DNA from: Paragordius varius
Taxonomy: Eukaryota; Animalia; Nematomorpha
Direction: 5' to 3'
Assembly (NCBI GenBank): GCA_964247055.1
Contig: OZ176054.1
Span: 3,100,001 to 3,164,000 of the forward strand
DNA length: 64,000 nt
Part shown: positions 7,938-52,585 of the stretch, piece after piece
How the letters are laid out: each line of letters starts with the position of its first letter
Numbering within the stretch: position 1 is the first letter of the stretch
Notes under the pieces: generated by a model
Databases searched by the model: none
The model's input: the letters and a program-made list of their open reading frames with translations, nothing else
What the model was told of the DNA's origin: nothing
Position numbers and translations under genes: made by a program

Positions 7938-10900
7938 CTATTTTTTAGCGTCAGGTGTTTTTCCCATTTCTATTTCCACGGTACAATCTTTAGGCATTAT
8001 GGCTTTAAGTTCATCTTTAAAGGCGGGTTTGGGGTTTTGTGGGACATTTCTTAACTTAAGTTTTTGTAATTTATGTAAGTTAGGTAGGTATTTGAAAAGA
8101 CCCTCCTGAGTTATTTCATAACAATCTGAGATAGTTAGAGTACGTAATGACTCAGCAGAATATTTTGCAATTTTTTGCAAACATTCATCCGTAACATTGG
8201 GCGAAAACATTAGGAAAATATCTTTGAGATATATAAGGCCATTCAGGTATTCGAACCCGGAAGCATCGACGCATGATTCGTTAGTGTTGAAGGCTTCGAT
8301 ATACATATTGTCTGTAATATTAAATTATAAAATTTATGTAATATAAATATGATAATTTAAATATAAAAAACATTATTGCTAAAAGAATATAGAATAGTGG
8401 TACTCATAAAGCGGGCCGCATGCGACCCTAAGAGTGCTTTAAAGTTGCCCTATGACCATATTGATACTTAAATTATTTTTTTATTGATGAATTTTTAAAT
8501 TTTCTTTAGATTTAATATGGTAATTTTTATTTTTTACCAATTTGAAATGTAGAAAATTTCCCTACATTAAAATGATTTCAAAATTTTGGCACAGATTGTT
8601 TCTGTTTCTGCATTCTATTTTCTTTTCTATATGAAATTTTATTGCATTCCTTTTTTGTATTTAAGCAAGCCTTTCCCACAAACTTGCATATACACAATCT
8701 TTTCATTGCTATCATATTTCAAACTCATTCCCATAAAATATTTTTCAAATCAACATCATTAAATTTGACCTGTTTTTTCATAGCATAATTCAAAAGACAT
8801 TATACAATCCATCATTCTCATAAATTACCAGAAAATCATGAGGAAAAAAATGAAAAATATAAAAAAATTAAGGAAATTATACCAAAAAGAAAAATTTATT
8901 ATGTCCATAGCTTTCTCCCAGGAAAAAGCTGTAACATTAGTTTCGTATGAAATTTGCTATATTATAGGAAAAAATGTGAAACCGTTTACTGAATCCCAAC
9001 TGATAAAAGAATGTCCAATAAAGGGTTGCACTTTTTTATTTGATAAATTCCATAATAAAGATCAATTCATGAGGCAAATTAAAAAACTTTAACTTTCTGA
9101 TTCAACATGTGCTCGACGCATTGAAGATATGTCTAAATATATTTTTAACAATACATTATTGGCTCTGAAAAACTCCAATAATGCTGTTGATTCTAGCACT
9201 GATTTTAGTTCAACACCTCAATGTGCCCTCTTTGTGAGATTTAGCAACGACAACATAATCCACGAAGAATATTTATAATTTTGGCCAATGAATAATACCA
9301 CGAATGAAAAAGATCTTGAAATAATTTGCACATTTTTCGATAATAATGATATATCTATGAAAAAATTGGTTTCGATCTGCACTGTCTGTCCCTCTATGAT
9401 TGGGATTTATTACTCTTTTGAAAAACAAATATAACTGCAAAATATTTTATCCTTTCACTGCTTTATTCATCAGCAAAACTTGGTTTCGCGTGTAAAAAAT
9501 AAATCACCATCCGTGGCAGAGAATTCAACCGCTTCAAATTCAAAAACCTTCCGTAAGCTATCCACAGGAAGTTTCATGATACTCTTTGTACACCGCTGTG
9601 AGATGGCTAAGCCTTAGCAAAGTATTAAATATATTTTTTGTTTTTAGACATGAAATTTTATTATTCATAAAAGATCAGAAAGTTTGACGAGGATATTAAT
9701 AGTGACAAATGGTGGGTTATATTTAAGGTGACCAGATTTTTTGAAGGAAAAAGCGGGACAAATCTGAGAAGGGGGGGTCATTGGGGGTACAACCAAAAAT
9801 TATACAAAAAATTTATTGTAATATTTATTTATTTTTAACACAAATACATTATAAATATAAAAAAATTTGTACCTTACAGGTTGTTTGTACCTTATTCAAT
9901 AAATTTACATGTGCACAAACAAAGGGTGAAGTGATTGTAAGATTCTGGAAAAAAATAATAAAGACGAAATCATCACAAAGTGCGCTGGGTGATGCAAGAA
10001 GCGGCACAAAAAATATTTTTAACAATTTAGCGAAGAATGTTAATCAAAACATTATTGGCAGATACACAACGCTATTCAAACAGCTACTGATTTGTTACCC
10101 CTGGATGTGGAAAATATAGATGTTAAAATGCTTGGATATTGTAGAACTGTTGGTTAGCTCTTTTGCCAGCGATTGAAATATTTATAAAATTGTGATCTTC
10201 TAGAATCCTATTTTTTATCACAGGACAAAGGTCAAAATTCCAAGTCAAAAAAGATTAGAAAATAATTTTATACCATAACCTAATTGGAATATTATAAAGC
10301 ATCCAGAAAAACAAGGCTCAATGAATAGCCAGGATATAAAAATGTTTTATACAAACTGAAAAGATTATTTGGAAGACATTCAGTGACACTTTTTTATGAA
10401 GTATCATTATTAAATAAATATATTGATAATGAAAACTTAAATTATGGAAAGAAAAAATACAGTAGAATATAAATGGTTTAAAATAATCATTTTTGAACAA
10501 ACTATATTCCATACAATAATATTTTGAAATTACCTGGAACCACTGCTATTGAACGCGTTTTTCCACAGTAAATCAAGTGTCGACACGGAAATTTAAATGT
10601 TGAAACTTTAAAAGCCATTTTATGTGTTCAAATATAATTTGACAAATTATTATGAAGACTTATACAATATTTTAAGTAATTTTTATTTTTTAAAACAAAA
10701 ATTTATAAATATAAGAAAATATTTTATGCTTTGGTTTATTATTTATTTGAGTGAATGCGTTTTAGCAGATTGTCATCATTTTTTAAAATATTGTAGAAGT
10801 CTTCACAAGCATTTGTCAAATTATATTTGACAGATAAAACGGCCTTTAAAGTTTCAACATTTAAATTTGATTTTTCCGATGCCCACACATGATTTACTGT

Positions 10901-13900
10901 GGAAAAAACGCGCTCAGTAGCAGCGTTGGTTCCAGGTACACATAGTGCGAGTTCCACAATTTTTAAATCAAAACGATGAAATATTTCCAACCATTTCTTT
11001 TCTACTGTATATTTTTCTTTTGTCCATAATTTAAGTTTTTCATTATTAATATATCTTTTAGCTAATGTTACTTCAGAAAAAAGATCATTTTCTGAAAGAT
11101 TACTTTTTAAGAATTTTTGGGAGCAGATATAATCAAATGATTTTTGTACATCGCACCAATTAAATTCTGATTTTAATGTTATCCAATAAAAATGATCAAT
11201 TTCATTGAATTGCGTCCGGTTTTCCAAATCATCTTCAGTTTGTATAAAACAATTTTATATGGTACAGGATATCGATTTATTAAGCCTTGTTTTTCTAAAT
11301 TATTTATTATATTACGGATGGTTAATGGTATAAAATTATTTTTTAACCGTTCTTGACATTGGAATTTTATTTTACTAACTTCATTGGCTACTTCAATTGC
11401 CGAAATTTTGTCACCTTCTATAAATTTAATATTTTGAAAGAGAGAAGCTTGATTATGTAAGAATTCTAACCATATTTTTGAAAAATCACTTTCAATTTTT
11501 TAAAGTTGTAGGACATTTGTCCTGTGATAAGAAAAAGATTTTAAAGGATCATACATTTTTAAAATTCTTTCGATAGCTGGCATATAAAAGCTAACCAACG
11601 AGTTTTACAATATCCAAGCATTTTTTGATATTGAACTTCTGCATTTTCACAGAATTCTTTAAGCGTTTCAACACGTACCGTGTATATATAAAAATAGGAA
11701 TATATTTTAACAACTACATTTTCTACATCTAGGGGTAACAAATCAGCAGCTGTTTGAATAGCGTTGTGTATTATATGCGTGCACACCCAACGCCAATAAT
11801 GTTTTGATTAAGATTGTCTGTTAATTTATGAAAAATATTTTTTGTTCCCCTCCTTGCTTTTCCACCAAAGTTCGTATTGGTTTTGTCAGCGCAAATTTTG
11901 TCTTTTGAATTATTTTTTTCTAGAATATTCATTATTGAAGTAAAAATTATGTCGGAATTTTCACCGGGTAGAGAAATAAAATCTAAAATTTTGTTTTTTA
12001 ATCCGGTTTCTGGATCAAAATATCTTATTGAAGTTGAAATAATTTTGTTTCCTTGTGATTTGATGCATTAGAGTATAGCGATATGAAGTTAATTTTCAGC
12101 AAATCTTTTTGTATTTCAGAAAATGCATGTGGCGAAAGGACATTGCATACAATGGTTTCAGCCTTTGTACGGGCACATGTAAAATTTTTATTGTAAGGTA
12201 CGAATAACCTGTGAGGTACAATCCATAGATCTAAAGGAATGATTGTGATTAACGGCGTGAAAAGATAAAACGCCTTCAGCTAGTGCCAAATTCTTTTCTT
12301 CCTCTCCAAAAGCGGTTTTTGTATAAAAATCGCTTATTTTTTAAGATGATGCCGCCTTATCCAAACATTTTTTATGTTTCTGTGTTTCCATATGCTTTGT
12401 AATATCATGCTTGCCGCCATGTGCTAGGGTGAATACCCCCTCGCATATAAGACATTTAACAAATGATTCATTCTTTGTTTTTTTGATAAAAAGAATTTTC
12501 ATCAATTCATCGTTGAATTTACAACCTCTTTTTGTGCTCATATTTATAAACTTCTATTTATAATAAATAGTATAGTACCTTAATTTTCTGGAATAAACGT
12601 GTAAGGTACCGATTTGTCGTATCAATTTGTCTTTTAAGCTACCGATTTGTGGTATTAATATGGCTTTTTAATAATGTTGGCAAGTAATTAAACTAAAATA
12701 TTAGTATAATAAATTTTATATTATTTAATTTTCTGGAATAAAAGTGTAAGGTACCAATTTGTGTTATCAATTAAGTCTTTTAAGCTAACGATTTGTGGTT
12801 AACTTGGCTTTTTGATAATGATGACAGTAGAAGTAGGAAGCAAAGTGCATAATCATATGATATAAATTCTAAAAAAATAAATAATTTTAAATTAAAAATA
12901 AAAAATTTTAATTTAAAATTGATATAGATTTTAAAGATATTTAATGATAAAAAATTTAAACGGATAAAAAAAATTTATTTGTATTAAAAATTTTTTTTAT
13001 GTATAATCGTGAAAAATCGTGACATTTTAAAAACGTAGCGGGACGCGGGACAAAGTGTGAAAAAGCGGGACGTCTGGTCACCTTAGTTATATTATACCTT
13101 TGCGTCATTACTTATGAAGTTTACAAGGGAGCATAATAATATCTATTTGCTAAGCAAATATTTTCTTTTAAAGAAAAATTAATATTTTATAAACGAGATT
13201 ATTTAAATTAAACACTCCTAAATTTCCCAACGCTTGATTCATGAAGAAAATATGGAATTTACCGCGGAGATTAATTTAATAATAAACAATCATTTAATAT
13301 TATCAAATGCGATGAAATTGAGATTTCAAAAATTAAGAAATAGTAATAATTGCTTAAAGCTCGTTGAAAATCCATGGCATAAGGATACATCCAATATTAA
13401 GCAACTTGAGCATTTCCGTTTTGATCAAGTGCATAATCGTAGATTTAAAAATTGATTCCAATTTGGATGCTATATTCAAGGAGATACGTAGAGAAGAAAT
13501 ATATGTAGTGTTTCGGCAAGATGTGCCAAATAAATATGAAAATAGAAAAAAATGTGCTCAAGTAATCCTAACTGTTTTTCCCTCAACTTACACGTGTGAG
13601 ACGGCATATTCACTGAACTATATCAAGAATACGTATAGAAATCGAATAACCGATGATACGACGTTAAGATTGGCCTGTCATGAGGCGAAACCAAATTTGT
13701 GAATTCCAGAAAATTAAATAATAATATAAAATTTATTATACTAATATTTTAGTTTTATTACTTGCCAACATTATTAAAAAGCCAAATTAATACCACAAAT
13801 CGGTAGCTTAAAAGACAAATTGATACGACAAATCGGTACCTTACACGTTTATTCCAGAAAATTAAGGTACTATACTGTTTATTATAAATAGAAGTTTATA

Positions 13901-16900
13901 AATATGAGCACAAAAAGAGGTTGTAAATTCAACGATGAATTGATGAAAATTCCTTTTATCAAAAAAACAAAGAATGAATCATTTGTTAAATGTCTTATAT
14001 GCGAGCGGGAATTCACCCTAGCACATGGCGGCAAGCATGATATTACAAAGCATATGGAAACACAGAAACATAAAAAATGTTTGGATAAGGCGGCATCATC
14101 TTAAATAATAAGCGATTTTTATACAAAAACCGCTTTTGGAGAGGAAGAAAAGAATTTGGCACTAGCCGAAGGCGTTTTATCTTTTCACGCCGTTAATCAC
14201 AATCATTTTTTTAGATCTATGGATTGTACCTCACAGGTTATTCGTACCTTACATACATGTGCCCGTACAAAGGCTGAAACCATTGTATGCAATGTCCTTT
14301 CGCCACATGCATTTTCTGAAATACAAAAAGATTTGCTGATAATTAACTTCATATCGCTATACTCTAATGCATCAAATCACAAGGAAACAAAATTATTTCA
14401 ACTTCAATAAGATATTTTGATCCAGAAACCGGATTAAAAATTAAAATTTTAGATTTAATTTCCCTACCCGGTGAAAATTCCGAAATAATATTTACTTCAA
14501 TAATGCAAAAAAATAATTTAAAATACAAAATTATCGTATATTGCGCTGACAACACCAATATGAACTTTGGTGGAAAAGCAAGGAGAGGAAAAAAAAATAT
14601 TTTTCATGAATTAACAGTTAATCTTAATCAAAACATTATTGGCGTTGGGTGTGCAGCGCATATAATACACAACGCTATTCAAACAGCTGCTGATTTGTTA
14701 CCCCTAGATGTGGAAAATGTAGTAGTTAAAATATATTCCTATTTTTATATATACACGGTACGTGTTGAAACGCTTAAAGAATTCTGTGAAAATGCAGAAG
14801 TTCAATATCAAAAAATGCTTGGATATTGTAAAACTCGTTGGTTAGCTTTTATATGCCAGCTATCGAAAGAATTTTAAAAATGTATGATCCTTTAAAATCT
14901 TTTTCTTATCACAGGACAAATGTCCTACAACTTTAAAAAATTGAAAGTGATTTTTCAAAATATGGTTAGAATTCTTACATAATCAAGCTTCTCTCTTTCA
15001 AAATATTAAAATTATAGAAGGTGACAAAATTTCGGCAATTGAAGTGGCCAATGAAGTTAGTAAAATAAAATTCCAGTGTCAAGAACGGTTAAAAAATAAT
15101 TTTATACCATTAACCATCCGTAATATAATTAATAATTTAGAAAAACAAGGCTTAATAAATCGATATCCTGTACCATATAAAATTGTTTTATACAAACTGA
15201 AGATGATTTGGAAAACCGGACGCAATTCAATGAAATTGATCATTTTTATTGGATAACATTAAAATCAGAATTTAATTGGTGCGATGTACAAAAATCATTT
15301 GATTACATCTGCTCCCAAAAATTCTTAAAAAGTAATCTTTCAGAAAATGATCTTTTTTCTGAAGTAACATTAGCTAAAAGATATAGTAATAATGAAAAAC
15401 TTAAATTATGGACAAAAGAAAAATATACAGTAGAAAAGAAATGGTTGGAAATATTTCACCATTTTGATTTAAAAATTGTGGAACTCGCACTATGTTTACC
15501 TGGAACCAACGCTGCTACTGAGCGCGTTTTTTCCACAGTAAATCAGGTGTGGACATCGGAAAAATCAAATTTAAATGTTGAAACTTTAAAAGCCGTTTTA
15601 TCTGTCAAAAATAATTTGACAAATGCTTGTGAAGACTTCTACAATATTTTAAAAAATGATGACAATCTGCTAAAACGCATTCACTGAAATAAAAAATATA
15701 CCAAAGCATAAAATATTTTCTTATATTTATAAAGTTTTTGTTTTAAAAAATAAAAATTACTTAAAATATTGTATAAGTCTTCATAATAATTTGTCAAATT
15801 ATATTTGAACACATAAAATGGCTTTTAAAGTTTCAACATTTAAATTTCCGTGTCGACACTTGATTTACTGTGGAAAAACGCGTTCAATAGCAGTGGTTCC
15901 AGGTAATGTCAAAATATTATTGTATGGAATATAGTTTGTTCAAAAATGATTATTTTAAACCATTTCTATTCTAGTGTATTTTTTCTTTCCATAATTTAAG
16001 TTTTTATCAATATATTTATTTAATAATGATACTTCATAAAAAAGTGTCACTGAATGTCTTCCAAATAATCTTTTCCGTTTGTATAAAACATTTTTATTTC
16101 TTGGCTATTCATTGAGCCTTGTTTTTCTGGATGCTTTATAATATTCCGATTAGGTTATGGTATAAAATTATTTTCTAACCTTTTTTGACTTGGAATTTTG
16201 ACCTCTGTCCTGTGATAAAAAATAGGATTCTAGAATCACAATTTTATAAATATTTCAATCGCTGACAAAAGAGCTAACCAACAGTTCTACAATATCCAAG
16301 CATTTTAACATCTATATTTTCCACATCCAGGGGTAACAAATCAGTAGCTGTTTGAATAGCGTTGTATATCTGCCAATAATGTTTTAATTAACATTCTTCG
16401 CTAAATTGTTAAAAATATTTTTTGTGCTGCTTCTTGCATCACCCAGCGCACTTTGTGATGATTTCGTCTTTATTATTTTTTTCCAGAATATTACAATCAC
16501 TTCACCCTTTGTTTGTGAACATGTAAATTTATTGAATAAGGTACAAACAACCTGTAAGGTACAAATTTTTTTAGATTTATAATGTATTTGTGTTAAAAAT
16601 AAATAAATATTACAATAAATTTTTTGTATAATTTTTGGTTGTACCCCCAATGACCCCCCCCCTTCTCAGATTTGGCCCGCTTTCCTTCAAAAAATCTGGT
16701 CACCTTACATATAGGTCAAACATATTTGCCATCATAAGGTTCAAGGCCCTCGAAAAAAAATATATTTTATTTGGCCCGTCAATATTTTTTGGTGAGTAGC
16801 ACTGATATAGAATATCAAAAAATTAAAATAAAAGATAAATATCTCAAAGAAATCCAGATTAAATATTTAGTTTCAAAATTTCGATTTATAAAATGGATTT

Positions 16901-17434
16901 AGTTACTATATTTTCTATTATAAATTAATATGTAATCGATGTTAAATGAATTCCAGATATTTTTATAATTTTAGATTTTACGAATCAAATAATGATTTAT
17001 AAATCGTGACTATTAAATTTAAATTTTAAAGACAAGCTTTTAATATTGATGAATCTTTCCAAACAGGTAGAAAATAATTAATTTAAAAAGATACATAGTT
17101 GCCAATCATTTGGAAAAAAGCAAATAAAGAACTCTAACATATAATTTGGTTAAACATGATATAATTGTTAAGTGAAACCATATCGTGACGAGGTAATCAG
17201 GGAATAATCTGTTATCCATTCTGGATATTCAACAAATTTGACCGATGCACCACATCGCAATAACCATTGAGCGGCTGCAATGTTGGGCCCAACTTTTTTG
17301 GTTGTTTCAGTATCGTAAGAATTCCATATTTTATTTAGCCAAGTCCAAAATTGTCTTGCTTGAATTGTATTTTGCTGGGAAATACTGCATGCAATTTTTG
17401 GCTTTAGGAGAGAATTTAAAATCAAACTAGTCAT
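7938..17434 (-). CDS. DMAC2L: Mitochondrial ATP synthase subunit s / coupling factor B (LRR); exons 17434-17179 and 8311-7938, 209 aa
   Basis: Exon 1: N-terminal presequence then FWTWLNKIWN...GPNIAAAQWLLRCGASVKF...WITDY. Exon 2: IEAFNTNESCVDASGFEYLNGL and LRR-like CLQKIA...LTISDCYEITQEGL...LQKLKLRNVP. Phase-1 GT (17178) joins AG (8312) in frame. Matches ATP5S as recalled. Confidence 0.85.
9724..13085 (-). mobile_element. hAT family B element (BED zinc finger transposase pseudogene) nested in family A
   Basis: 13-bp TIR TAAGGTGACCAGA at both ends; 8-bp TSD GTTATATT (9716-9723, 13086-13093); BED finger CLIC...KHMETQKH, CADNTN, HIIHN, TRWL and TERVFS motifs split by frameshifts. Confidence 0.92.
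12581..12830. repeat. Imperfect ~140-bp tandem duplication in the 5' subterminal region of hAT-B
   Basis: Two units beginning TAATTTTCTGGAATAAA.GTGTAAGGTACC.ATTTGT at ~12581 and ~12727. Confidence 0.7.
13702..16709 (+). mobile_element. Second hAT-B copy lacking its 5' end; inverted duplicate of 9724-12738
   Basis: Reverse complement of the first copy, with shared frameshifts and only scattered substitutions (compare ORFs 13904/12341 and 15208/10739); ends in the TIR TCTGGTCACCTTA at 16709. Confidence 0.92.
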
Positions 17435-17502
17435 ATCGAAAAATATCCCAGATCCTTCCCCTTTCTTTGTTAAACCGCGTATTGAACAGATAAAAATTAA
17501 AC
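17435..17502. promoter_or_regulatory. Putative bidirectional promoter/5' UTR interval shared by ATP5S and CDC5L
   Basis: Divergent ATGs at 17434 (-) and 17503 (+), 68 bp apart; no motif confidently assigned. Confidence 0.6.
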
Positions 17503-28380
<10,878 letters not shown>

Positions 28381-42437: not shown

Positions 42438-44856
42438 CAGTGATACTCAAACCGCGGCCCGCGGGCCGCATGCGTCCCTAAGTGTGCTTTAAAAATGCAG
42501 TATGAGACTGATATTTAATTTTTTTACCCAATTTGAAATGTAGAATTTCCCTACATTAAAATGATTTTAAAATTTATGATTTATGGGCACACGTTGTTTC
42601 TTTTTCTTTTCTTTTTGAAATTTTTATTGCATTTCTTTTTTTGTTTTCACCCATTGCACATACATTTCATTTATCCTGCATCATTTTTAAAACTCATTCC
42701 CATAAAATATTTTCAACTCAATATCATTAAATTTCGACCTATTTTTTATAGCATATTTCAATTTATATTCCTATTTTTTTACATAATATTTAAACATAAA
42801 TTCAAAGGATGACATCTAATGCCAAAAAACGTAAATTATCCGATGAAAATCGCTCCTTTAAAAAAGAATGGGAAATTTTTGTCCTTTTAACAATGTTGCT
42901 ACCTGCCTTATATGCAAGGACAACATAATTATAAAAAAATACAATATTGAAAGACATTAAAATCCATCATTCTCATAAATTACCAGAAAATCTTGAGGAA
43001 AGAAATGAAAAATATAAAAAATTTTAAGGAATTATACGAGAAAGAAAATATTATGGCCATAGCTTTTTCCCAGGAAAAAGCTGTAACATTAGCTTCGTGT
43101 GAAATTTGCTATATTTTAGGAAAAAATATGAAACCGTTAACTGATTCCCAACTAATAAAAGAATGTTTAATAAATAATTGCACTTTTTTATTTGATAAAT
43201 TCCATAATAAAGATCAAATCATGAGGCAAATTAAAAAACTTCAACTTTCTGATTCAACATGTGCTCGACGCATTGAAGATATGTCTAAATATATTTTTAA
43301 TAATATATTATTGGCTCTAAAAAATTGCAAATACTTCAGTATTGCAATCGATTCTAGCACTGATATAAGTTCAACACCTCAATGTGCGCTCTTCGTGAGA
43401 TTTTGCAACGACAACATAATCAACGAGGAATATTTGAAATTTTTACCAATGAATAATACCACAAAAGGCAGTGATTTTCTTGAAGTAATTAGCACCTTTT
43501 TCGATAATAATGGTATATCTATGAAAAAATTGGTTTCGATTTGCACAGATGGCTGTCCCTCTATGATTGGAATAAACAAAGGGTTTATTCCTCTTTTAAA
43601 AAACAAATATAATTTGCAAAATCTATTATCCTTTCACTGCTTTATTCATCAGCAAAACTTGGTTTCGCGTGTAAAAGATGAATCACTAAATTTAGTAATT
43701 AAAACGGTTGTGGATATAGTTAACTACATCCGTGGCAGAGAATTCAATCACCGTAAATTCAAAAACCTTCTGAAAGATATCCACAGTGAGTTTGATGATA
43801 TTCTTTTGTACACCGCTGTGAGATGGCTAAGCCTTAGCAAAGTATTGAATAGATTTTTTGAATTAAGTAATGAAATTCTATTATTTATAAAAGATAACAG
43901 AAAGTTTGACGAGGAAATTAATAGTGACAAATGGTGGGTTTTATTAGCCTACCTTTGCGACAATACTTATAAACTTAGTACTTTTAATACAAGTCTTCAA
44001 GGGAGCAAAATAATAACCCAATTTGCTAATCATATATTTGCTTTTGAAGAAAAATTAATAATATATAAACAAGATTTTATAAATAAAACACTCCTACATT
44101 TTCCATCACTTAAAACGATTCATATAGAAAATATGGAATTTACTGCAGATATTAATTTAATAATAGACAATCATTTAACATTTTTATCTAATGAGATGTA
44201 ATTCAGATTTCAAGAATTAAAAAATATAAAAAATTGCTTAAAACTAGTGGAAAATCCATGGCATATGGATATATCCAACATTAAGCAACTTGAGCTTTTC
44301 GGTTTTGATCAGGCGGTTATCATTGAAGAATTCGTTGATTTTAAAAATGATTCCAATTTGGAAGCTATATTTAAGGAAAACCGTAGAGAAGAAAGATATG
44401 TAGAGTTTTGGCAAGTTGTGCCAAATAAATATGAATATAAAAAATGTGCTCAAGTTATCTTAACTATTTTTCCATCAACTTACACGTGTGAGACGGCATA
44501 TTCAAAAATGAAGTATATCAAGAATACTTACAGAAATCGCTTAACTAATGATCATATGGACGACGTATTAAGAATGGCCTGCCATGAGGCGAAACCAAAT
44601 TTGTCAAAAATTATTGGTTAATATTAAAATAAATGTTGTTATCAATATATTTTAATTTTTAAAACTAAATGGTGCAAAACGAATTTTTAGCTGGATTTAC
44701 ATGCGACTCGCAAAAAATTTATTGTGTTGATTTAGAGTATAAATATGTGCGTATGTGTCAAATAGCTATGGAATATTTGCCATTATAAGGTTCATGGCCC
44801 TCGAAAAAATAATATGTTTTATTTGGCCCGTCAAATTTTTTTGGTGAGTACCACTG
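42438..44856 (+). mobile_element. Full-length hAT family A (Buster/GTF2IRD2/EPM2AIP1-like), 2419 bp
   Basis: TIRs CAGTGATACTCA / TGAGTACCACTG; TSD ATCTAAAA (42430-42437, 44857-44864). Confidence 0.95.
42809..44621 (+). pseudogene. hAT transposase, inactivated (5' frameshift/stop near 42880-42960, nonsense TAA at 44199-44201)
   Basis: MTSNAKKRKLSDENRSFKKEW start; AIDSSTD, CTDG, HCFIH, VRWLS and ETAYS motifs; ORFs 42993 and 44247 are in one frame separated by a single stop where the other copy has AAA. Confidence 0.9.
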
Positions 44857-45594: not shown

Positions 45595-48500
45595 ATGATG
45601 AAAATTAATTATACGATACCGAAAAAAGAAAATATTGGTAAATATAACTTATTATAAACAAGGTTGTACTTTAGCAATCAATGAAACAAGCTACGAATAC
45701 AAAGAAATTCTCAATATAATTACGAAGCTATGTTTTATTGATAAAAATCCATTGGCCAATCTTAAATTACACCAGGTAAAATGTGTATAACGTTTCAAAG
45801 GCGATGCTTATAACAAATAAAAAATTGGAAAGTAATTACAACGAAAAAAAGATAGCTATGAAAAGGGACGGAAATGTTTTAGAAACATACGCCTTTTTAT
45901 TCTGTACGCAGTCACAAGCAGAAACTATAGCTAAAGATGGAATGAAGTGTTGCAACATCGGCAAATCTATTTTAGGTGACAATATTAAAGGTGTACATTT
46001 GTATCGTTTTTTGGACATATGTACGCTCGATGCAATCACAGATAATTGGTTTAATAAAGTTTGGAGTTATGGCGATAAAATCTCTGACATCAAATATGGT
46101 GCATTAGTCATTTTTAAAGTTTAGTATAAACGTAATCGTAGGTTTTATTAGGTAAATTATTCCCGGTTAATGTCAATGAGCAGTTAAATAATATTGAGCC
46201 TTCACCATTACATGATGCCCATGTTACAGATAGCAAACCAAATATTAAAGATAAAGGTTTTGTTAAACGCAATAAGTCATTGGTAATATCTTTTTTAATG
46301 TTTAGATATATTTTTACGAATACGATTTGGTAACTATGACCACAAAAGATTATCCTCGCCAAATCCTACCTTATGCATATCTCAATTTTATTAAACCTGC
46401 CCCACCTTCCTATAAGACAAAAGAGGAATCCATATACAATCAAACTATTAAGAAACCAGTTATGGCACCTATTCATAAAAAAGAGACGACGTTACAAAAG
46501 ATACCCGATGCAGAAATCATTTCGAGCAGCGAAAAAGAAATTAAAACTATTGAATCTCCCACAGAAAATGACGATGATATTAATCCTGATACCGATTATC
46601 GTTTTTATGATAAAACCTCATCTACTAATGAACCTGAATCCTTTATTAAGCAAGAAACATGGAGTGTAAACCACATGAATGGCTATCCAGACAATGAAAT
46701 GATTGATAGGTAGTGTAATATATTATTTAATTTCCATACAAATCGGTGTTTTTGCAAATAAGTATAGATAAGACATAAAATTATTTAATGAATTATTAAT
46801 ACAAGAAAGTTAAAACTCCGATTTGGCTGTCATATATCTATTTTTTTAAATGGATGCATGATATATATTTATAATTAAGCGCAAAAAATATTTTAATATG
46901 TTATTAAGCTAAACGGTATTTGTATACTCATCGATTTTATAATCCAAATATAATTAAATACACAATCTTTCAATTTTGGCTAAATATGAAAAAAATTAGT
47001 TACCGTCAACATTATAAATATTCATTAATATGTTCATCTCTGTAATTTAGGTGTTTCAATGAAAATTATTAAAAGAACATCATAAGTTTTAAAAATAAAT
47101 AGAATGGAATTTGACATTTTTTAAATCATCTATTTCATTATTTAAGGAAATTAATAGATTAATAATACTAAAAATATATTTTCTGGACAACAAATTTTTC
47201 TGCCACTCGAGTTTTTTGCATTTTCTGATATTTAGTATCATGTTAACAGTAAATCTAAAATAAAATTTATAACTCCACGCAAGAATTTTTTATAATTTGA
47301 TGAATTTGATTATGCGCCCTCAAAATTTTACTAAATTTTTTTTGAAAATATACAAGTAATGCCCATATGTAATATATCACGAAAGAGTAATAAAAACTCT
47401 ATAAAATGCATACTAGTATGTATTACATCGACAGTTAATATTGGACACAGAGAGCGACAAACGCGCGAAGCGAGAACATTTTTCTAAATATATTTTTAAA
47501 ACTAATGGATGAGAATAGCTTAAACTTTGTCTAGATGGTGATGAATGTCAAAATAACACAAGAAAGTTTTTTGATTAAAACATTTTTTTATTGCTTTTAT
47601 GTCACTCAAAACAGCCATTTTTAAGTTTTTTGTTTTTTAAGAATTACCATCTCATCAATATTAATTTAATTTCTTTACGAGGCTGATAATTTCGAAATTT
47701 TAAAGATAAAAACAAAGTTTAAGGTATTTTTGTTCTTTTATAGCCATTATGTAATAAAATTACAGTTATGACTATACATTTTTTATCCACTAGGTAATAT
47801 ATATGATAATAATAATTTTTATTAAAAAAGCAAACCAAAAGCTTTTTCAAACATTTTTCTTAAATTTAATACTAATATAGCCTTAATAATAATATTAAAA
47901 TAATTTATATGATTTTCAAATTAGTTTGTCTGTGAAAATTTATTTATTTAAGGATTGAAGATTTCGACCATATAAATCCAAAAAACTTTTACATCCGATT
48001 GATTTAAATGATTTACTACCTTTTTTGCGCTCTCTCGAATAATATAAAATGCATAGCTTCATAAACTTTTAATTTTCTGAATTTCGAGTTTAATGTTAAA
48101 TCGGGACCAAAAATTATCGATAAACTCCAATATAAAAAATTCTTGGGTGTTAGACCAATTTTCTTTTCAGATATAGTATTTATGTACTTTAATGAAATAA
48201 TTTTTAAATTTACAAGAATGGCAGTTGAAAAGTCAAAATTTGTGGTCTAGTGTTATTTGATTAAATTAATAGATTAATAATACTAAAAATATATTTTATT
48301 TTAAATTATTATATGGTCATATTGCTTAACAAGAAAACAGGTATGATTTTACGAGCTTTTGTTTTTAACTGTTATATATAAAGAATAATTATACACATAT
48401 TATTCATCTTTCTTTCTCCCGTTCTAGGCAACAAACTGAGGTACGTATGAATTACATCAACCAAGTTTTTCAACGCTTTATGTGTGATTTACGGATGGAA

Positions 48501-49394
48501 AATTTCAATTTTTGCCACTTTTTATACTCGTGTATGCTCAAACTCATGACCATACTATCGGCCAAAGTTGACAATGACAAAGATAAATTTGCCCTTGATC
48601 ACACTATAACTCTGTTTATGGATTATGTCCTTTCATGTCACAAACGGGGCAATCAGGTCTTCACGGGACGTGATCATTTGAATCATGAGTTGCTTAACGT
48701 CGTTAGTGATATCATTGATGGAATCATGATGAACAACAATGCAAATTATAACCACGTAAAAAGTGAGTATATTCATGGGGTAAATCATCATCAAATAACT
48801 CCTTCGAATCCAAATCAATATGGTTTTGGAGCGGGGCCGTACGAATCTCTTGCATTACATACCAACACAACAATAAGTTCTATTTTACAATACCCTGTGG
48901 ATGTTACTAATAGATTATATACACCTCATCAACCAGCAACATTCATGAATCATTTAGATAACAATCCTATCAATATTAAGGATCCACGTATTGCAACTAA
49001 ATTGTCAAAAGATCTCACTAATAATACATTAAGTTCGGAGGATGAAACTTCCAAACTCACGATAGATATTGGATCTCCCCCTACCGTTGAATCAATGACA
49101 ACACCAATAAATAACTCAGGCATTTTGCCATCGGCAATTTCACCCATAGATAACACTGCTACTAATTCAAGTAGCTCAGAACTTATTTCAAACATAAAAA
49201 GATTGAAAACATCGATAAAAAATCAAAATGCCGATTTTCATGGCCGTACCCTAAGGTATAAAGAACTTCCCTTTATAATACCACCCAATTCTAGATCAGA
49301 CATGCATGATCCTAGAACAGTGCTCAGGGGTAGGCAAAATCCACCGTTGTTAACCAAACAATTTGATGCTGTAAAAGTTGTATACTCGAAATAG
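45595..49394 (+). CDS. DUF3715 (PARP-like) domain protein, TASOR/TASOR2/TEX15 family; exons 45595-45637, 45663-45775, 45801-46118, 46142-46282, 46306-46709, 48428-49394 (661 aa if 49394 is terminal)
   Basis: Spliced YTIPKK...SYEYKEILNII...AMLITNKKLESNY...ETYAFL...LGDNIKGVHLYRFLD...LVIFKVLLGK...EPSPLHDAHV...IYFYEYD...YPRQILPYAYLNF is colinear with recalled TASOR FQIPRK...SREFEDVVNIL...ACLVHNELLEKEF...ESYAFL...LGSPSMGVYLSRYAD...VVIFKIMKGK...DPTPKHECHV...YYFYEY...RPRHVCPYAVVSF. All junctions GT-AG and in phase; 3' end uncertain. Confidence 0.82.

Positions 49395-51080: not shown

Positions 51081-52585
<1,505 letters not shown>

Follow-up and report, generated by a model that had tools for sequence, protein, structure and literature searches.

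The closest described relatives of the gene reported here are TASOR and TEX15, which share the DUF3715 (RDTS) domain, a catalytically dead PARP fold. LINE1 silencing still works when the DUF3715 domain of TASOR is exchanged for that of human or zebrafish TEX15 (PMC10578480). Schopp et al. (2023) described TASOR-like DUF3715-SPOC-DomI proteins throughout Metazoa and placed the origin of DUF3715 in early eukaryotes, and TEX15 is reported to be vertebrate-specific (PMC10578480). In a 2026 preprint (10.64898/2026.09.07.749791), DUF3715 was the sole domain detected in proteins of 21 of 28 cnidarians, which were termed 'truncated Tex15 homologs'. Structural and mutational work on TASOR established that Tyr217 is the only residue of the NAD site that TASOR retains, that the Y217A variant remains functional, that the β8-β9 loop is extended, and that mutation of Tyr305 abolishes silencing (PMC7532188). 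Here we describe a DUF3715 gene of the horsehair worm Paragordius varius, located at 45595-49394 on the plus strand of a 64,000-nt stretch of contig OZ176054.1 (hereafter, the window). Judged by its sequence, the locus is one intact protein-coding nematomorph gene, the product of which joins a DUF3715 domain to a C-terminal part unlike that of either vertebrate protein.

The gene was searched exon by exon. Exon 3 alone matched the crystal structure of the TASOR pseudo-PARP domain, 6TL1, with an expectation value (E) of 2.9e-6. In a HMMER search of 1.84 billion representative proteins the same exon returned a single match (E 2.7e-8, 41% identity): a 715-residue uncharacterised protein from the horsehair worm Gordionus sp. 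m RMFG-2023 (LOC135927156, hereafter P0001), which is already present in NCBI and carries a PF12509 match. P0001 covers residues 5-210 of 6TL1 (E 2.5e-15), with its residues 20-130 aligning to residues 5-115 of the structure. When P0001 was compared with the window by tblastn, exons 2 to 5 were found in their order along the gene (summed E 4e-27). The ends of the matching segments coincide with introns 3 and 4, and the reading frame of the match shifts across micro-intron 3. Together these alignments identify the first ~235 residues as a predicted DUF3715/RDTS domain, and we consider membership of the family secure. The first-pass annotation of this DNA had assigned the N-terminal ~230 residues to DUF3715, and the match of exon 3 to 6TL1, the collinearity with P0001 and the Pfam score of P0001 agree with it. 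When set against PF12509, that assignment held for the orthologue (44.2 bits, with a cut-off of 28.5) and fell short for exon 3 alone (14.5 bits, E 0.036, sub-threshold); no single exon reaches the Pfam cut-off because the domain is split over four exons, of which exons 4 and 5 are too short to get through the search filters.

The gene has six exons and five introns. All five introns start with GT and end with AG, and one reading frame is kept once they are removed. By coordinate arithmetic the exons sum to 1,986 nt, or 661 codons and a stop. The features of the gene are as follows.

45595-45637, plus strand: exon 1, with the start codon, the first 14 codons and one base
45638-45662, plus strand: micro-intron 1, 25 nt, GT-AG; position common to the Gordionus gene
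45663-45775, plus strand: exon 2, N-terminal helix of DUF3715; tblastn match to P0001 residues 26-47, 50% identity
45776-45800, plus strand: micro-intron 2, 25 nt, GT-AG; counterpart in Gordionus 8.9 kb long, at an identical place in the protein
45801-46118, plus strand: exon 3, pseudo-PARP core with YAFL and GVHL
46119-46141, plus strand: micro-intron 3, 23 nt, GT-AG, with an in-frame TAG inside; FK/VLLG position common to Gordionus
46142-46282, plus strand: exon 4, VLLGK...EPSPLHDAHV block of DUF3715; 42% identity to P0001 residues 177-228
46283-46305, plus strand: micro-intron 4, 23 nt, GT-AG; counterpart in Gordionus 1.1 kb long, likewise at KS(L/M)/IY
46306-46709, plus strand: exon 5, last DUF3715 strands (IYFYEYD...YPRQILPYAYL), then an acidic linker of ~105 residues
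46710-48427, plus strand: intron 5, 1,718 nt, GT-AG
48428-48740, plus strand: exon 6, beginning, ~100 residues forming a conserved block with four predicted helices
48741-49394, plus strand: exon 6, remainder, a disordered N/S/T/P-rich tail ending at the stop codon TAG

The N-terminus encoded by exon 1, MMKINYTIPKKEN, was matched by eye to that of P0001, MKLTNFIIPKKE. The four short introns of 23-25 nt that the first-pass annotation had removed are all found here (25, 25, 23 and 23 nt, each GT-AG and frame-keeping); that annotation was silent on the 1,718-nt fifth intron, although its coordinates include it. Intron 5 contains a 45-nt direct repeat (47138-47182 and 48253-48297, 93% identical, spaced 1,115 nt apart), and may reflect either local duplication or an insertion whose ends it marks. 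A second copy of intron 5 was not found elsewhere within the 64-kb window.

To relate the domain to TASOR we use the numbering of the 6TL1 construct, which spans residues 110-332 with 261-269 deleted (PMC7532188). The position of the catalytic histidine of PARP enzymes (TASOR L184) is a leucine in the window protein, within YAFL, and a serine in Gordionus. At the position of TASOR Tyr217 both worms have a histidine, giving GVHL in place of the GVYL of TASOR; the first-pass annotation had singled out this same substitution, which we can now place at Tyr217. The histidine is probably of little consequence, since the Y217A change is without effect in TASOR. Two sites of the PARP triad, those of the histidine and the tyrosine, can be mapped with confidence (that of the glutamate cannot), and in the alignment both are degenerate, which indicates a DUF3715 pseudo-enzyme rather than an active PARP. 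The equivalent of the essential Tyr305 is kept in the window protein within a Y.YEY motif, and the extended β8-β9 loop with its PR dipeptide is also present: through P0001, the window segment IYFYEYD...YPRQ aligns to YYFYEY(305)GFDELRRRPRH of TASOR. The decapeptide EPSPLHDAHV in exon 4 matches DPTPKHECHV of TASOR. The pocket-plugging residue Tyr295 of TASOR is an arginine in both worms, and the site of Leu130 is an isoleucine in exon 2.

Mapping P0001 onto its own locus revealed five introns, located after residues 15, 54, 177, 224 and 424, and all five intron positions of the window gene are common to it, including the one that precedes the C-terminal exon. Sharing of five positions excludes chance, and it also excludes two separate genes. 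The lengths of the matching introns differ: those of the window are micro-introns of 23-25 nt, whereas in Gordionus they range from ~46 nt to 8.9 kb (introns 1-4 at 8046-8102, 8220-17147, 17517-17563 and 17705-18823 of the P0001 locus sequence; two of them are ~46-57 nt, the others 8.9 kb and 1.1 kb). Between hairworm genera, then, a shared intron position does not dictate micro-intron size. The Gordionus counterpart of the long intron 5 is only ~50 nt and lies just 5' of the helical block. Over the exons that encode DUF3715 the window and Gordionus proteins are only 33-50% identical (36-42% for the three largest of these exons); in the tail the figure is ~24%.

P0001 and a second Gordionus protein, P0003 (LOC135927155), belong to the same orthologous family as the window gene. 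The two genera share one order of parts: domain, linker, helical block, a DPR motif, FHGR..LP.IIP, and a second DPR motif. Gordionus has at least two tandem, near-identical copies of the gene, whereas tblastn across the 64-kb window finds one. The Gordionus copies lie ~20 kb apart, are 97% identical and have a ratio of non-synonymous to synonymous substitution rates (dN/dS) of 0.17, with a dS of 0.081; this ratio indicates that both have been retained by selection. We compared the loci over 8001-20346 of the P0001 locus sequence and 10001-20463 of the sequence of the second paralogue. Fifty-three codons differ between the paralogues, 42 of them within the first 305 codons, and the 3' halves are nearly identical. 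This pattern points to gene conversion or to a history of duplication that was uneven.

Downstream of the domain, the protein appears to consist of a linker, a four-helix block and a disordered tail, and the sequence comparisons show this part to be unlike TASOR or TEX15. By tblastn, the acidic linker of ~105 residues with which exon 5 ends matches nothing in P0001 residues 285-435; the linkers of the Gordionus proteins are unrelated to it, and that of P0001 has almost no predicted structure in AlphaFold. In exon 6, two blocks are collinear with P0001 (tblastn E 0.016 and 0.06). The first of these is the helical block, which matches P0001 residues 436-493 (E 0.016). AlphaFold predicts four helices in this block, at exon-6 residues 2-20, 26-46, 50-73 and 81-101, with a predicted local distance difference test (pLDDT) score of 43-55, and the same four-helix pattern in P0001; over both proteins the block scores 40-55. 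Exons 5 and 6 (E ≤10) and P0001 (E ≤1) gave no Pfam match to SPOC, TEX15 or any other family, the SPOC result coming from the Pfam models and not from the custom SPOC-DomI model of Schopp et al. For the TEX15 domains this means that no TEX15-family Pfam match was found at the same thresholds. The linker is too short and too poorly conserved to leave room for SPOC plus DomI. Exons 4, 5 and 6 had no meaningful sequence match in the PDB, and a search of the ESM Atlas with the C-terminal part returned no usable match. Two candidate resemblances were rejected as chance. In a profile search of the PDB, the MazG-like four-helix protein 1VMG matched the C-terminal part with an E of 0.65, its acidic metal-binding residues being left unaligned, and NleB-type effectors matched exon 5 with an E of 0.11, within the disordered linker. 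The layout of acidic linker, helical block and N/S/T/P-rich tail had been anticipated in the first-pass annotation, as had the absence of SPOC and a C-terminal architecture differing from TASOR and TEX15, and the exon and P0001 searches support it on each point. Structure prediction beyond residue 230 was less conclusive: the helices were predicted in exon 6, but the exon 6 model, made with a three-row alignment, reached a pLDDT of only 36 overall.

Compared with TASOR, the window protein is homologous over the whole length of the N-terminal domain, and has in common with it a degenerate NAD+ site, the YEY motif with the essential Tyr305, the PR-containing extended β8-β9 loop and a (D/E)P(S/T)P.H(D/E).H motif. 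It differs in carrying His and Arg in place of Tyr217 and Tyr295 and in what follows the domain, where the SPOC, DomI, DomII and PIN modules of TASOR are replaced by the lineage-specific helical block and short motifs. Human TASOR is also much longer, at ~1,670 residues compared with 661. For TEX15 we relied on P0002, a mammalian DUF3715 fragment that is presumably the TEX15 N-terminus. Like it, the window protein has an N-terminal DUF3715 domain with no SPOC after it, and the two share the exact motifs IFKVLLG(R/K) and Y.YEY; the window protein differs from TEX15 in being far shorter and in having no TEX15 domains. Bit scores of 101 for P0002 against TASOR, 59 for P0001 against TASOR and 68 for P0001 against P0002 give a rough indication that the hairworm domain either falls outside both vertebrate paralogues or is fast-evolving. 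The cnidarian DUF3715-only proteins, which we compared by their description only, are invertebrate like the window gene. Three word-index protein searches recovered only P0001 and one mammalian fragment, although the length limits and make-up of the databases mean that absence from them says little. An invertebrate DUF3715 gene is thus not new in itself, as TASOR-like and DUF3715-only proteins have already been published, and the first-pass annotation, for which DUF3715 silencers had been characterised essentially in vertebrates, overstated the surprise (PMC10578480 and the 2026 preprint). We found no description in the literature of the predicted architecture common to the two hairworm genera.

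The tail contains two DPR motifs that are conserved between the genera. The first, IKDPRIA, lies at exon-6 residue 185 and the second, HDPRT, at exon-6 residue 294; they are collinear with the DPRs of P0001 at residues 606 and 684. Also conserved is FHGRTL..ELPFIIP (FHGR.L, then LP.IIP), with the second DPR following about nine residues past LP.IIP. Two DPRs would arise by chance with a probability of 0.0012 in exon 6 of the window gene (20,000 shuffles) and 0.0036 in the C-terminal part of P0001. P0002 likewise has a KDPRLL downstream of its domain. The DPR motif is required for binding of WDR82 by SET1A (PMC9911701), and the crystal structure obtained with S. pombe Symplekin shows it bound in a pocket of WDR82. 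A connection of the HUSH complex to WDR82 and to the machinery of termination has been described (PMC10915761; PMC7619638), and TASOR has been noted to carry a DPR motif (PMC13710762; PMC7619638). As in SET1A, ZC3H4 and S. pombe Symplekin, the DPRs of the window protein lie in disordered sequence, close to a hydrophobic motif. We regard WDR82 docking through the two conserved motifs as a lead that names a concrete candidate partner.

We propose that the protein would work in the nucleus as an adaptor without enzymatic activity, serving to repress its targets, most plausibly transposons, co-transcriptionally. Its pseudo-PARP domain would contribute the same effector step as in TASOR and TEX15. 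Partners would be brought in by the helical block and short motifs of the C-terminal part; the most concrete candidate is WDR82 with the termination machinery, by way of the two DPR motifs. The silencing role is drawn by analogy from the vertebrate relatives, because the DUF3715 domains of TASOR and TEX15 can replace one another. On balance we think it somewhat more likely than not that the locus is an intact hairworm DUF3715 gene with such an adaptor role. Several points weigh against this. The AlphaFold models of P0001 (single sequence, pLDDT 30) and of exon 6 (pLDDT 36) are of low confidence, so that the PARP fold and the helical bundle stand as predictions, and the gene model is likewise a prediction from sequence. 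SPOC-DomI, which assembles HUSH in TASOR, is absent, so a HUSH-type complex should not be assumed. We found no test in the literature of the function of an invertebrate DUF3715 protein. A tripeptide motif is weak evidence alone, and the hydrophobic L..LP.IIP block near the second DPR is, by eye, an imperfect fit to the published WPL/I, LI-like and LxxPxF patterns, a difference from the WDR82-binding proteins named above.

The strongest competing explanation accepts a genuine DUF3715 protein and assigns it another role: it might be a general regulator of transcription termination or of RNA processing, or else a factor in meiosis, and have no more than the pseudo-PARP module in common with TASOR and TEX15. 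Even for mammals the molecular function of DUF3715 has yet to be established (PMC10578480), the SPOC-DomI region that ties TASOR to HUSH and the TEX15 domains that tie TEX15 to its own pathway are both absent, and DPR motifs also occur in the general transcription factors SET1A and ZC3H4. Set against this, all DUF3715 proteins studied so far act in RNA-directed transposon silencing (PMC10578480), the domain is interchangeable over large distances, and the Tyr305 equivalent is kept. We consider a role outside transposon silencing plausible, and clearly less probable than the adaptor role in repression. It would take a considerably bolder step to propose that hairworms carry a minimal silencing adaptor, with DUF3715 wired directly to WDR82, a hub of transcription termination, by two DPR motifs and a small helical domain and operating without SPOC-DomI, MPP8 or Periphilin; as a conjecture built on these motifs, we hold this to be doubtful.

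The remaining alternatives dispute the gene or the pseudo-enzyme itself. Unspliced, exon 5 reads into a TAG at 46711-46713, the last exon has an ATG of its own at 48447, and the two parts are 1.7 kb apart, all of which would suit a DUF3715 gene ending at TAG 46711 and followed by an unrelated open reading frame from that ATG, or a gene in decay. One Gordionus protein nevertheless runs collinearly through both parts, and its gene carries an intron at the corresponding place; the GT donor (46710) and the AG acceptor (48427) keep the frame, and two C-terminal motifs are conserved. These points make two genes or a decaying one very unlikely. Least probable of all is an active ADP-ribosyltransferase. 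Membership of the PARP fold family could be cited in its favour, and the histidine at the Tyr217 position could be read as a change of the pocket; however, the catalytic histidine is replaced by Leu in the window protein and by Ser in that of Gordionus, the tyrosine site of the triad is itself that histidine, and the closest relatives are the inactive domains of TASOR and TEX15.

In HUSH as in PIWI-interacting RNA-directed silencing, the molecular action of DUF3715 is still being sought. A compact invertebrate protein of 661 residues that has the domain and its essential tyrosine, with a small helical block and short docking motifs in place of all the rest, could ease the search for direct partners of the domain, and its DPR motifs offer a testable version of a WDR82 link that has so far only been suggested for TASOR. 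If the minimal adaptor were real, it would represent HUSH-type co-transcriptional surveillance in a reduced or ancestral form, with the link between DUF3715 and WDR82 as the conserved core of the system. The gain is limited by the fact that invertebrate DUF3715 proteins have already been published and that the function proposed here is by analogy.

The window is AT-rich throughout, with a G+C content of 25-33%. Approximately 3 kb downstream of the gene, at 52286-52567 on the minus strand, lies a PCNA exon that codes for the N-terminal domain (Pfam E 3.7e-33). This neighbour is absent from the 8-10 kb flanks of the Gordionus genes, a comparison that is uninformative for synteny. About 1 kb upstream, at 42993-44621 on the plus strand, lies the remnant of a hAT-type transposase, apparently split into a 402-residue open reading frame with a weak DUF4371 match and a 124-residue open reading frame with the hAT dimerisation domain. 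Further away, a translated match of ~37% identity connects an intron of the second Gordionus paralogue (16659-17050) to positions 23718-24104 on the minus strand of the window, and probably reflects a shared transposon family.

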